A model generated the notes under the pieces. It did not search any database. It was not told the origin of the DNA and saw only the letters and a program-made list of their open reading frames with translations. The translations under genes and the position numbers were made by a program. Positions 4,316-35,679 of a stretch of 64,000 nucleotides of DNA are shown here, one piece after another. The stretch comes from Rebecca billardiae RCC1528 (taxonomy: Eukaryota > Protista > Haptophyta): contig OZ251235.1 of NCBI GenBank assembly GCA_965240325.2, positions 248,001 to 312,000 of the forward strand, written 5' to 3'. Each line of letters starts with the position of its first letter. The first letter of the stretch is position 1.

Positions 4316-4780
4316 ACGGCCGTTGTGTTGACAGTGTTGAGTGTCCACAGTCCAGCAGGTGCTGCCGCCCCATTCTAGTCTGTTCGTAGTGACAGCGAGG
4401 TCGATCATCGCAACGCGTGCCCTATCATTCTACGGCCCTTGCCATTGTATCGTCACATCAGAATCCTCACAATCGCGTACCACAAGTTCCGACGCGTCCT
4501 AAGGTGCCAGCCCACACTGGCGCACGCCCCACGCGCCGCCGCCGGCCGGGCCGGCAGCCCTGCTGACAATGGGCAGCCTCTGATAAAAGGCCGTCGGCTG
4601 TGATTCAATGACTGATGAACTGTAATAGTCGATATGACTTGCGTTACCCACGTATGTGTTTAAGACCCGCGCAAATAATGATGCGCCGCCCTTTTGCGGT
4701 CGTCATCAGTACTCATCACTGCTCACCAAGGCCGCCCGCCCTCGCCAGAAACAGGCAGTCCCTCGCGGGCAGGGGTGACG

Positions 4781-5534
4781 ATGTTTCGCAGCAAGGCGGC
4801 GGGCAACGACGGCGACCGATCCGGCTCAGCACCACAGATCCGGCTGTATGCGCCGCCCGCGCGGCCCCGCTGCCGTGCCCGCGCGCACTCGCACGCGCCA
4901 CCCCCATTGCGCGAAGCGCGTGGCATATGTGCCAGCGCACGTGTGCGTTTGCTTAAGCCTGCCGGGCGCGCATGCGGCGCGTGGCGCGCGCAGGGGCAAG
5001 ATGTCGATCGGAGGGCGCAGTTCACCATCAGCAGATAGTGCGCAACAGACGCCACCAGCCGACGGGAAGCGCCCTCCGGCGCTGAACAGGCCAAAGCTCG
5101 GCCTGCCCGGTTCACGGCCCGCACGGCAGTCAGACACAGCAGCCATCGCAGCGTCAGCCACGGCGAAGGACCTCGCGCCAACGACGAAGAAGGCGGAGAC
5201 TACGGGCGAGATGACGCAGGGCGATTTCCTCATGGCCGCGAAGGCCAGGCGTCGCCAGCAGGCGGAGGCCGGCGGCGACGGCAGCCCGGTCAACACGTCG
5301 AGTGGCACCTCGGCCTCTGCACTCGACGACTCGCAGGTCCATGCGCCCATCGCTCCGAGCGGCGGCACGCCGCCGCCGCCGCAGCGGCGGCGACCCGGCG
5401 GATCGGAGCCTTCGGGAGCAGGCGCTGGAGCCCCGCCGAAAGGCGGCTCCCTTCTCGGTGACATCGACATACCAACCAAACTTCCCGGCCAGGAGTCGCC
5501 GACGAAGCTGGGCAGAGAGCGCACGTCGTGCTGA
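4781..5534 (+). CDS. Hypothetical low-complexity protein; probable exons 4781-4845 and 4994-5534
   Basis: A GT-AG intron at 4846-4993 joins MFRSKAAG...PQIRL in frame to GKMSIGGRSSP...; coding-like sequence but no recognisable domain. Confidence 0.5.
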
Positions 5535-6396
5535 CGGATAGGTGTGCGCGCCCCTGAGCATGGCTTGGAGGTTCCACTGGGCAGCGCTCGCACACTCCTC
5601 CGCAACCTCACACACCTCGCGAACATCGGGGCGGATGTCCACGCGTCGCGCGCGAGACAGCACGGCCACCGGCGCGGACAGACGACAGTGCTCATCACTT
5701 CATCAGTCTCATCATGTCGGATCAAGTCGGACCGACGACCGTGTCCGTGTCCGTGACGGCGTCCCACGGCCACCGTCACAGACAGGGCCGACGGATGCAT
5801 CAGCACTCGAAGTTCATGACTCGAATGCTGCCAGTAAAAGCCGACGACACTTAATAGTATGGGTGCGCAGATCTTCGTACTCAAGATGCGCGCGTTGGCA
5901 CAGCTGATTCAGCTGCGAACGACTCTGACCAGATCCGGCTCGGCGCTCACTCCGTGCGACTCGCCAGTCGCAGTCGCGGCAGCTCTGTGAGCTCACCGTG
6001 CCGTCACTCGTCATCATGGCAGTCTCCGCGCGGCTTCTCACGGCAAAGTCACTGCATATGACGCCCGCCCATCCGCGACGAAGACGTGAGACGGAAGGAG
6101 GCCGCAACAGAACGCGTCCTAGCTGCCCGAAGGCGACGTGGCTGCGACTCCTGGACCAGGCACCACCAGCCAAGCTGGCCCACGGCCAGGAATCAGCCAG
6201 CCAGCCGGCAGGCAGCGGCGCGCGCTCCGTGCACCTGCCAGCTGCTCGCCCGTCGCAGCAGAGAGCGCGCACAGGGGCGAGGTCTGCTGGCCATGGCGGG
6301 GCTGGTAGCGGAGACGTGGAGTTCCGCGTCGGCATTAGCCGCCTGCGCTGCCCTGCGCGCGCGGTGGACGGCGCGCACCACCGCCACCCGTGCCGC

Positions 6397-31920: not shown

Positions 31921-32845
31921 GAATAATGTACTATGTAGCAGTCGTAGCCGCCGCCATTTGTCGCGTCGTAGGTTACTCGGTGCATGTCCGGTGACGATCA
32001 CTACTCATCACTGCTACTCACTGTGACGATGACGATGCCGGCAACCAGTGAACCGCACTCCGCAGCCGGCGAGTCTCCGCGAAACTGTCACTGTCAGCCC
32101 GACAGTCAGTGGCGGGGGCCCACTCGGGCGCGCGGCGCCGGCGGGAATGAGGCGGGCCCCCAGTACTGAGTCCGGTGCCGGTGTCCAGCGGGGCGGGGGC
32201 GCGGGGCCCCGCTCGCGATCCAGCGACCAGAGTCTTTGATGACTGCTTTGAGTTTGAGGCTCTACTATAATACTACTCGTCCGCCGCGGTCGGGTCGAAT
32301 GGCGCGAAGCGCTGCTTGAGCTCGTCCGTCTCGCGCGCCTCGAGCTGCTGCACGCTCAAGCCGACAAGCGGCCTGTCCGACAAGCCGTCGCTGCGAATAT
32401 AATGTAGCAGTCGTAGCCGCCGCCATTTGTCGTCGCGTCGTAGGTTACTCGGTGCATGTCCGGTGACGATCACTACTCATCACTACTCACTGTGACGATG
32501 ACGATGCCGGCAACCAGTGAACCGCACTCCGCAGAGCCGGCGAGTCTCCGCGAAACTGTCACTGTCAGCCCGACTTATAGTTATTGGCGGGCCGGCCCAC
32601 TGGCAGCGCGCGGCGCCGGGAATGAGGCGGGCCCCCAGTACTGAGTCCGGTGCCGGTGTCCAGCGGGGCGGGGGCGCGGGGCCCCGCTCGCGATCCAGCG
32701 ACCAGAGTCTTTGATGACTGCTTTGAGTTTGAGGCTCTACTATAATACTACTCGTCCGCCGCGGTCGGGTCGAATGGCGCGAAGCGCTGCTTGAGCTCGT
32801 CCGTCTCGCGCGCCTCGAGCTGCTGCACGCTCAAGCCGTCGCTGC
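31921..32845. repeat. Tandem duplication (~470-bp unit) covering the CWF19L1 C-terminal codons and 3' flank
   Basis: 31921-32394 is near-identical to 32395-32845 with small indels; both copies encode SVQQLEARETDELKQRFAPFDPTAADE* on the minus strand. Confidence 0.92.
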
Positions 32846-35007
32846 CTGGCGCGGTCGGATCCGGGAGGCAGGCTTTCCAGTCCGCGCGCTCGGGCGTGCC
32901 CAACGCCTGCGCGAGCGCCTGCCGGGCGAACATCATCGGGTGCCTCCGTGGGTTGGAGCTCCTGCGGGCGCGGCAGCGGCCGCGGCGGCGGGAAGGTGCG
33001 CGGGGAGTGGCGGCAACGGGCGGCGCGGCGTGAGTCGAGGTGGCGCGCGGGGGCTCGGCCATCGGGGGGCGGCGCGCGCGGGGCACGGCGCCGCGCGCAC
33101 ATCCTGTGGAGCAGCACGCCGCCGTCCCCGGGGAGCTGCACCCACAGGTAGCCCTCGCCGTCCGCCACCCCGGCCGGCGGCCATTGTGCGGAGCGCACGT
33201 GCTCGAACGAGACGCCGGCCGCCTCGCCCGCGGCCTGCAGGGCGGCGCGGACGCCGGCGGCGCGCTCGCGCGGCACGGGCAGGAGCTGCAGGTGCAGGTG
33301 CGCGCGGCCGGCGTCCAGACCGCCGCCCCGCGTGCCCATCTGCCGCTCGAACACCACCGTCTCCGCGCCCTCCGCCGCGTAGCACTGCGCCAGCGCGTCG
33401 CGCAGGGCGAGCATCTCAGCCAGCACGGCGCGCTCGCACGCGTGCGCGCTCGCCGCGTGGCTCACGGGGAGGACGAGGGCGTTGTGCCGGACGAGCGGGC
33501 CCTTGGCCAGGGCGACGTACGCCTCGGTGCCCACCGCCACCACGAGGTGCGCCTCGAAGTGCTCGCTCGCCATGCAGAACCAGCACGCGCGGTTGGCCCA
33601 GCCGCGCACGGCCGCGCCGCGCCGGTGCTCTTGCGCCGACGCGACGCGCCACGTGCGCGCGCCGTCGTCGATGACGACGCCGTGCTTCTCGCGGAGCTCG
33701 GCGCGGAGCGCGTCCGCGGTGTCAAAGTTGCGCTCCGTCCGCGCCGCCTCGCGCCGCACCAGCAGCTCGCGCACCACCCCCTCGTCGACCGGCTCGGCGT
33801 CCTCCGGGTGGCGCGTCGGCAGCGGCGGCATCGCGCGCCGCTTGGCCGAGTCGCCGTTCGGCGCGCCGCCGGCGGCACGCGCGCGCTTGGCCGAGCCGCC
33901 GGGGGGCGGCGGCGGTGGCGGCGGCGGAGCGGCGGGAAGCATGGCCCCACCCGCGCCGGGCATGTGCGGCGGCGGCGGCGGCGGCAGCGGCGGCGGCGGA
34001 TGCCCGGGCCCGAGCTGCGGTGGCAGCGGCGGCAGCGGCGGCGGCGGGGGCTGCGGCAGCGTCGCGCCCGCACCCGGCTGCGGCGGCGGCTGCTGCGCCT
34101 CCGGCGGCGGCGGCGGCGGGTGCACGTGCACGCCGACGTACGGGTTCTGCGTCGTCCCATCTGGCTGCTCGAGCAGCTTGGCCGCGTCCATCCGGCCGAG
34201 GGGCACCACGCTGAGCGCGTGCAGCCACTTGCGCCGAGCATCCCCGACGCGGCCGAGGGCCACGAACCGCGTCACGTGCGACGGGCTCCCGTCTGCGCGC
34301 CAGTTGGCGTACGGCGGGCGCGCCCACGCGACGCCCGAGCCGCCGGCGAAGTGGTACCGCGGCAGCGCGGCGGCCGCCAGCCGCGCCGAGCGCACGGTGC
34401 CCACCTCGTCGAGCGGCTCGGAGCCGCCCAGCGCCGCGCTCGCGGCAGCGCGCGCGTCTGCCCCGAGCTGAGCGCACACGCCGCGCGGCCAGCTGGGTGT
34501 GAGCAGCAGGTCGACGCCGGCGAAGTTGCGCCGGGCGAAGTGCGCATCCAGGGCCTCCGTCTCCGCCTGGCCGTCCTCGCCCAGCGGGCCCACCGGCCCG
34601 GCGGCCGCAGGCACCGGCTCGAGCGGGGCCGAATCGTACGCCACGCGGAGCCCGTGCAGGGTCGTGAGCTCCGAGTTGGGGAGCAGGATGATGTTCGGCG
34701 CGATCTCGCCATTGGGATGGCCCTCGAGAAGGCTTCTCGCCACCGCGCACTCGAGCCGCGCGCTGAAGATGTACGTCGGCAGCGGGGCCTTCTTCTCGCC
34801 GTCCACGTACGGCCGCAGCCCACGCGCCGGCTCGTCTCCGTCGCCGAGGAAGTCCCCGACGCAGAAGAGGCACTTGAACGGGCCGTGCTTGCTGTCCGCG
34901 CCGACGACCTTGGTGAAAAGCGATGCAAAGTCGCCGCGCACGTCGCCCGCGACGAGCAGCTTGACCGGATCCGAGTTGACCTGCGCGCGGCCATAGCCCG
35001 AGGCCAT
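32748..35007 (-). CDS. CWF19L1: CWF19-like protein 1 (Drn1): pseudo-metallophosphoesterase + Pro-rich linker + CwfJ C1/C2; exons 35007-33101 and 32961-32748
   Basis: KLLVAGDVRG...GPFKCLFCVGDF, GVDLLLTPSWP, PRYHFAG...RPPY...TRFVALG...KWLHA; CWFC...HLVVAVG.EAYVALAKGPL; HLHLQLLPVP; spliced HPMMFARQ...ERADWKAC...FAPFD. Confidence 0.92.
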
Positions 35008-35679
35008 CGTCCTCGTGCTCGCCCTGCACGCACTGGCGGCAAGTCCGCAACGGTGTGCGTGAGGCGAGGCGCGCGAGCCGACGACCGGCTGCATCGGCAT
35101 CCCTCAAGGCCCCTGCGCCTCGCCCGTAGGCATCGGGGGTGGCATCTTGTACAGTACAGTAGGCAGGTTGGCGCGGTCGTACGAGCGCGTGAGCACGAGG
35201 GACAGCTTCCTCTCCGGCTTCTCGACCACTCTCACGTCCACGTCCACGTCCTCGTGCAAACGGCGCGCTTGAGGCTGCGCATGGGCAAGTCGCGGCTAAG
35301 ATCACCCTCGTGACGGCCATGCTGTCCTCTTTGGAATGCCGTACGACGGTGCAGACCTGCCCATCTTCCGCGCGACCCAACACGCCGTGAGCCTGACGAT
35401 CAAGGTTGGCTGCGTGTTAGTCGTGTGAACTCGTCACTGACGCCAGTGTCAGTCGGTTTGACGGGCACGCGGATGGCGGGGCCGTGACCGTCCGGTCGAA
35501 GCTGCAGCTGCAAATACGTGTGCGCGCCTGTCAACGGCGGGGCGAGCATCGATCGACATGGCTAGCGAGCTGATCAGGGCTGGTAGCAACCTTCTCTGGG
35601 ACACGCCACACGGTTGGACATGTTCTTCACTCGGAACGACCGTCAAGTGCGGATCAGACAGACATCATCCGATCAGCAG

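Follow-up and report, generated by a model that had tools for sequence, protein, structure and literature searches.

The CWF19L1/Drn1 gene and its domains

CWF19L1 is a Dbr1-related factor that belongs to the intron-lariat spliceosome (ILS) and a poorly understood cofactor of lariat debranching and spliceosome disassembly, which is mutated in a human ataxia. We analysed a stretch of 64,000 nucleotides from the haptophyte Rebecca billardiae RCC1528 (contig OZ251235.1, positions 248,001 to 312,000), hereafter the window, the numbering of which is used for all coordinates unless another contig is named. On its minus strand the window contains a gene (32748-35007) which, judged from its sequence matches and domains, is an orthologue of CWF19L1/Drn1. 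Between a Pro-rich linker and the CwfJ domains, the encoded protein carries a module that has its homologue in the anticodon-binding domain at the C-terminus of bacterial-type cysteinyl-tRNA synthetase (CysRS) and probably serves as an accessory RNA-binding unit.

The open frame at 32740-35100 on the minus strand holds the peptide VVRELLVRREAARTERNFDTADALRAELREKHGVVIDDGARTWR at 33646-33777 (open-frame residues 442-485). The preliminary description of this DNA had placed the segment between the Pro-rich linker and CwfJ-C1 of a CWF19L1 protein, and both the placement and the host proved correct. A plus-strand reading of the same region, which gives a meaningless translation, was rejected. Exon 1 (33101..35007, minus strand) was defined from the open frame and from a phmmer search of PDB, in which it matched human CWF19-like protein 1 (8ro2 chain L1, E 5e-49) and the CWF19L1 homologue in entry 8ro1 (E 3e-46), the two entries being the human and C. 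elegans ILS structures (PMC11958768). The match to CWF19L2 was far weaker (E 1.6e-6), and the gene is therefore assigned to CWF19L1/Drn1. The domain set of this type was also found, namely a Dbr1-like N-terminal domain, CwfJ_C_1 and, in two halves, CwfJ_C_2. Neither the tRNA-synt_1e catalytic domain nor the CysRS helical bundle was found in the protein with Pfam, so that the gene does not encode a synthetase. Two genes with CwfJ_C_1 were detected in the genome; the other one is CWF19L2-like, and the gene in the window is this alga's only CWF19L1/Drn1-type gene. In the CWF19L2-like paralogue (G000:C3:1281585-1281890; L017:1057-3306, minus strand), CwfJ_C_1 and CwfJ_C_2 are preceded by a KH_1 domain (E 3.9e-12) and by Gly-rich stretches.

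The start codon at 35007 agrees with the start of the orthologue P0001, a protein of 687 amino acid residues from the Logan run SRR29340329, which likewise begins with MASGYG. The N-terminal Dbr1-like (pseudo-)metallophosphoesterase domain occupies 34123..34980 on the minus strand (exon-1 residues ~10-295). Residues 13-290 align to residues 4-266 of human CWF19L1 (8ro2_L1), and the AlphaFold2 (AF2) model has a predicted local distance difference test (pLDDT) score of mostly 87-97 over this domain. The domain was identified through the PDB search with exon 1; a Pfam scan of the N-terminal domain alone gave no match. The Pro-rich linker follows at 33793..34122 (minus strand; residues 296-405, ~110 residues) and is predicted to be disordered, with pLDDT values of 32-56 and without secondary structure. 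At the end of the linker, just upstream of the module, lies a KRAR...KRR stretch, KRARAAGGAPNGDSAKRR (33835-33888, minus strand), which by eye looks like a predicted bipartite nuclear localisation signal; P0001 carries a comparable KRAR...RR stretch. The CysS_C-like module itself, a helix-helix-beta-hairpin of 51 residues, is encoded at 33640..33792 on the minus strand (residues 406-456). It is followed by CwfJ_C_1 (33256..33591, minus strand; Pfam PF04677, E 7e-24), of which the CWFC motif (C475 W476 F477 C478) is invariant across the 42 relatives described below, and in which an HLHLQ motif was seen by reading the sequence.

The end of exon 1 (33101..33159, minus strand) encodes GEGYLWVQLPGDGGVLLHR, the probable start of CwfJ_C_2, which fits the consensus YFxxELPxGxxLxHR of the 42 relatives and is not significant when searched alone. 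The open frame continues beyond LLHRM into a putative intron of 139 nucleotides (32962..33100, minus strand; GT..AG, phase 2), which was read from the sequence, with GT at 33100 and the AG ending at 32962. Exon 1 ends in the split codon AT|G, and splicing would give the in-frame product SSNPRRHPMMFARQALAQALG...FAPFDPTAADE followed by the stop codon. On the orthologous contig L004, donor and acceptor stand in the same context, while the intron itself has diverged. Because the intron splits CwfJ_C_2, the domain was tested in halves, with the exons searched separately and not joined. Exon 2 (32748..32961, minus strand), which contains the second half and the stop codon at 32748-32750, matches positions 45-94 of the 96 positions of Pfam CwfJ_C_2 (E 0.0084, alone below the cut-off) and, by BLASTP, the extreme C-terminus of the CWF19L1-like protein P0032 (E 1e-10).

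The 3' end of the gene lies in a tandem duplication of ~470 bp (31933-32363 and 32402-32838, 90-100% identity). The proximal copy holds the last ~30 CWF19L1 codons and the stop codon, and the distal copy repeats the coding tail …GLSVQQLEARETDELKQRFAPFDPTAADE and the 3' flank downstream of the gene. In a local synteny comparison, the neighbouring gene was not common to the window locus and contig L004.

Sequence and fold of the CysS_C-like module

The module stands in one continuous frame with the domains on either side of it. By codon position, its GC content is 0.83/0.48/0.98, which agrees with the 94% found at the third codon positions (GC3) of the exon. P0001, which is 59% identical to the window protein (68.5% at the DNA level over the gene), carries the module in frame and in the same place, and the substitutions between the two fall on the three codon positions as 10/16/21. 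Identity to P0001 is 58% in the module versus 63% in the 110 residues that follow it and reach into CwfJ_C_1; on these sequences, the module is about as conserved as the neighbouring CwfJ region.

With Pfam, a 57-residue piece searched alone matched CysS_C (PF23493) with 26 bits (E 1e-5), above the cut-off of 23, and the six-frame search of the genome gave 24.8 bits. The module also aligns to the extreme C-termini (the last ~45 positions) of the NCBIfam cysS models, which are equivalogs. A single-sequence phmmer search of PDB returned CysRS C-termini as three of the top four matches, with E values of only ~0.2-0.4. A first word-based protein search, in which 8000 candidates were scored, gave one match, low-complexity words having swamped the search. 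For a more sensitive comparison we used profiles of related repeats (see below). A profile of 45 repeats, from which the window, P0001 and the genome's second module copy were excluded, scored the window module at 77.7 bits, whereas none of 2000 shuffles exceeded 11.7 bits, although the repeats had been picked for likeness to the window module, which somewhat inflates the 77.7 bits. When the full profile (alignment A1, 48 rows) was compared with PDB, only CysRS C-terminal domains fell below E 0.001, five of them, from 3e-9 to 2e-4 (3tqo, 3e-9; 1li5/1u0b, 1e-7; then 8qhp, 3sp1 and 6ujd). The family-invariant residues of A1 (R15, A27, D28, L34, V40, D44 and W49) are all common to residues 412-459 of E. 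coli CysRS, and the module has the signature of CysRS, R..A(K/R)..(K/R)DF..AD.(I/L)R..L...G(V/I).(V/I).D....W. The likeness to the CysRS C-terminal pattern which had drawn attention to the segment was thus confirmed by the Pfam score, the A1 matches and the structural match given next.

AF2 modelled the module on A1 with a pLDDT of 91 and with helices at 5-20 and 24-38 and strands at 40-43 and 48-51. In the model of the whole exon, residues 406-456 fold into an island of the same secondary-structure elements after the disordered linker and before CwfJ. The module is accordingly alpha/beta, two helices and a beta-hairpin, and the original label of a helical domain has to be dropped. In an all-against-all structural search, residues 427-480 of Borrelia CysRS (3sp1_B) ranked first of 48,161 PDB chains (Z 7.4, root mean square deviation 2.3 Å over 50 residues, 30% identity); the next match had Z 5.5, and the runner-up folds (Z 5.1-5.5) were the UvrB C-terminal domain and the HOIL-1L/SHARPIN LTM domains, which are two-helix hairpins. 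The nearest folds in the Atlas were all CysS_C carriers with template-modelling (TM) scores of 0.83-0.93 (0.93 for a diatom protein, 0.83 for a bacterial CysRS). Sequence and structure matches together therefore give good support to homology between the module and the anticodon-binding domain at the C-terminus of CysRS.

Tandem CysS_C-like repeats and the origin of the module

An exhaustive search covered 1.84 billion representative proteins, and the best 150 matches were examined. Of these, ~98 were proteins of 320-950 residues in which query residues 5-65 were matched in 4-9 stretches, and the matches to these multi-module proteins reached E 1e-36. Pfam called CysS_C in 81 of the 84 repeat proteins scanned and also a C-terminal SAP domain in 43 of them. 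These proteins (among P0003-P0150) make up a large, uncharacterised eukaryotic family with a module period of ~75-85 residues, which in Atlas clusters is assigned to Eukaryota, most commonly Bacillariophyta and Haptophyta. Note that databases already label the repeats automatically by Pfam, and that some of the proteins have been auto-named 'cysteinyl-tRNA synthetase' by JGI. The Atlas also holds stand-alone CysS_C proteins of 65-75 residues in phages and bacteria, which we mention only as a lead.

The modules of the repeat family are 38-57% identical to the window module and, taken one repeat at a time, reach scores of up to 41.7 bits with it, versus 12 bits for E. coli CysRS. The two CysRS genes of the alga's own genome (on C1 and C32) reach only 4-5 bits on the module profile and keep just a weak half-module, with the remnant CDALRD..LGVR.ED...W. 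On these scores, the window module is much nearer to the eukaryotic repeats than to the CysRS sequences examined. It probably arrived by shuffling from the repeat family, an origin that is likelier than capture from a CysRS gene. The preliminary description had proposed a co-opted tRNA-binding module; the domain homology to CysRS stands, by profile and by fold, whereas the immediate source is probably the repeat family.

Module-like sequences were detected at four places, in three genes, of the genome, and the idea that the module is highly repeated there was dropped on this count. Besides the CWF19L1 gene, one of these is an open reading frame of 700 residues on C1 (G000:C1:489652-491751; L003:3652-5751, minus strand), in which residues 47-91, near the N-terminus, form a CysS_C-like module (47 bits on profile A1). 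It also has a weak S-adenosylmethionine methyltransferase signature at 388-475 (Methyltransf_25, E 1.5e-3); a PDB sequence search with this frame found no relative. Another encodes a Gly-rich protein with an RD-repeat tail on C11 (G000:C11, L009 ~4609-6164, plus strand). It has two CysS_C-like modules, both of which are interrupted after ADRLR by an intron in the same position and follow a GHDY motif, a feature they have in common with the multi-repeat family. The Y-x-R..DD lead-in that is typical of this family has left a trace in P0001, which was noticed by eye and is weak.

The linker of CWF19L1 and the role of the module

To place the module among CWF19L1 proteins, the additional domains of 42 CWF19L1-like relatives were compared. 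CCCH zinc fingers were found in eight of them, RRM_1 in five, CCHC knuckles in three, a cold-shock domain in one and CysS_C in two, the latter being the window protein and P0001; among ~52 CWF19L1-like sequences, P0001 was the sole other carrier of the module. Wherever both the PRYHF and the CWFC motifs are present, the CCCH, CCHC and RRM_1 modules lie between them (the cold-shock domain was not located). In the window protein, PRYHF is at 216, the module at 406-456, ~20 residues before CWFC, and CWFC at 475. In four of the CWF19L1-like proteins (P0107, P0109, P0115 and P0119), which come from metagenomes or Logan assemblies, CwfJ_C_1 is preceded by one or two RRM_1 domains; in those with the N-terminal motif, they lie in the linker. 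The preliminary description had named CCCH fingers at about the position of the module in plants, and this agrees with the eight relatives and with Arabidopsis AT5G56900, which is annotated as a CwfJ-like/CCCH protein (PMC9175010) and listed as AtC3H64 (PMC2267713). The CWF19L1 linker thus appears to be a slot that is filled by different RNA-binding modules in different lineages (CCCH, CCHC, RRM, probably cold-shock and CysS_C-like), and this variety suggests that extra RNA contacts matter for CWF19L1 function.

Yeast Drn1 associates with Dbr1, which it stimulates in lariat debranching, and binds branched RNAs, a function that depends on its CwfJ residues (PMC4105757); CWF19L1 co-purifies with disassembly factors and has been modelled in ILS structures (PMC11958768). 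The C-terminal domain of E. coli CysRS in its complex with tRNACys (1U0B) has been named anticodon-binding (PMC4519929). Since zinc fingers or RRMs take up this place in relatives, the module of the window protein is probably a lineage-specific replacement with an RNA-binding role. The explanation which we favour, with some reserve, is that a CysS_C-like module, probably shuffled from the repeat family, forms an accessory RNA-binding unit of CWF19L1 on the flexible linker. The module would have arrived by domain shuffling from the family of 4-9 tandem CysS_C-like modules, often SAP-ended, and would act as a bead on a flexible tether. It may help to hold the CwfJ domains, and via them Dbr1, on lariat-intron or snRNA elements, the role presumed for the CCCH fingers, CCHC knuckles, RRMs and cold-shock domain in the linkers of other lineages. 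The KH domain of the CWF19L2-like paralogue was counted toward this functional analogy, as were the Gly-rich, RD-rich protein and the methyltransferase-like protein as further hosts of the module in this genome, and the module's folding as an island behind a disordered linker.

Several points weigh against this explanation. RNA binding, both by the module and by the repeat family, is argued from analogy, and transcription and the exon structure are predictions. The CysS_C score falls below the cut-off, to 19-21 bits (bias-corrected), in the full-length, compositionally biased protein, and the profile behind the highest score was built from repeats selected for likeness, as noted above. Foldseek, run against PDB with the 53-residue model, gave nothing significant, with no match better than E 3; the comparison with CysRS structures that had been suggested for this segment was therefore negative with that program and positive in the all-against-all search, which ranks CysRS first. 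The architecture was found in two sequences only, and the module could consequently be a neutral, lineage-specific addition.

This last point leads to the most serious alternative, which we regard as possible but rather unlikely, namely that the module is real and folded and acts as an adaptor between proteins, with Dbr1 or a spliceosome protein as conceivable partners, or is a neutral passenger on the linker. Protein contacts are often made by two-helix hairpins of this size, to which the second-best folds (Z 5.1-5.5) belong, and both the rarity of the architecture and the analogy behind RNA binding leave room for it. However, the sole characterised homologue, the CysRS anticodon-binding domain in 1U0B, binds RNA (PMC4519929), classical RNA-binding domains occupy the same linker in other lineages, and between the two orthologues the module is as conserved as its CwfJ neighbour. 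The other hosts of the module (SAP proteins, a Gly-rich/RD-rich protein and a methyltransferase-like protein) also speak against it. Direct capture from a CysRS gene of the host, an organelle or a bacterium, with tRNA or anticodon-loop specificity retained, would link CWF19L1 to tRNA, e.g. to tRNA introns or tRNA-like substrates. This would fit the homology in sequence and fold to the CysRS C-terminus and the sharing of all family-invariant A1 positions with E. coli CysRS; it is nevertheless improbable in view of the scores (up to 41.7 bits for repeats versus 12 bits for CysRS), the weak half-modules of the genome's own two CysRS genes and, for what a faint trace seen by eye is worth, the repeat-family lead-in of P0001. 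A compositional artefact or a non-coding segment (an intron or a mis-assembled piece) is close to excluded, because, even if the gene has a GC content of 78-80% and abounds in Arg, Ala and Glu, the full-length protein gives a borderline Pfam score and the coding status is read from the DNA, the module far exceeds its shuffles (77.7 versus at most 11.7 bits), has a confident fold matching CysRS, is conserved in frame in an orthologue with 68.5% DNA identity, has a GC3 of 98% and lies near a recognisable true intron of conserved position.

If RNA binding by CysS_C-like modules is accepted, a broader reading can be put forward, which we hold to be speculative and doubtful as a whole. CysS_C-like modules may constitute a class of RNA-binding repeats in eukaryotes (algae) that has gone unrecognised and that descends from the CysRS anticodon reader. 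Tandem arrays (4-9 modules with SAP) would read exposed loop nucleotides, and single copies would serve as RNA anchors of a plug-in kind; in the present case, such an anchor would fasten CWF19L1 and Dbr1 to lariat introns or snRNAs, at a loop or a branch-proximal element. The finding in any case points to a large unstudied eukaryotic family built from repeats of a synthetase anticodon-binding domain, and, if the repeat proteins do bind RNA, they would be a further case in which parts of aminoacyl-tRNA synthetases are reused outside translation. We found no publication on CysS_C outside synthetases, on fused CysRS C-terminal domains or on this CWF19L1 variant, within an incomplete coverage of the literature.

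Among known systems, the module can be compared with the CysRS C-terminal domain (PF23493; 1U0B/1LI5 ~412-459, 3SP1, 3TQO and 8QHP), which has the same length of ~50 residues and the same fold. In CysRS, however, the domain ends a synthetase after the helical bundle/DALR_2, whereas here it sits inside a splicing factor, and the similarity of the window module to a single CysRS sequence is low (the 12 bits to E. coli). The tandem CysS_C-repeat/SAP proteins have 4-9 modules and often a C-terminal SAP domain, while the window protein has one module, without SAP, in another host; in sequence, the module is closest to these proteins, of which the Gly-rich protein with two modules is a member in this genome. 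Human CWF19L1 (538 residues) and yeast Drn1 have the same domain order as the window protein, Dbr1-like, CwfJ_C_1 with CxxC, and CwfJ_C_2, and have been described with those domains only (PMC4105757); the window protein adds to them the ~110-residue Pro-rich linker and the module. The relatives with CCCH, CCHC, RRM or cold-shock domains share with the window protein a small nucleic-acid-binding module in the same slot (the position of the cold-shock domain being unchecked) and differ from it in the type of that module.

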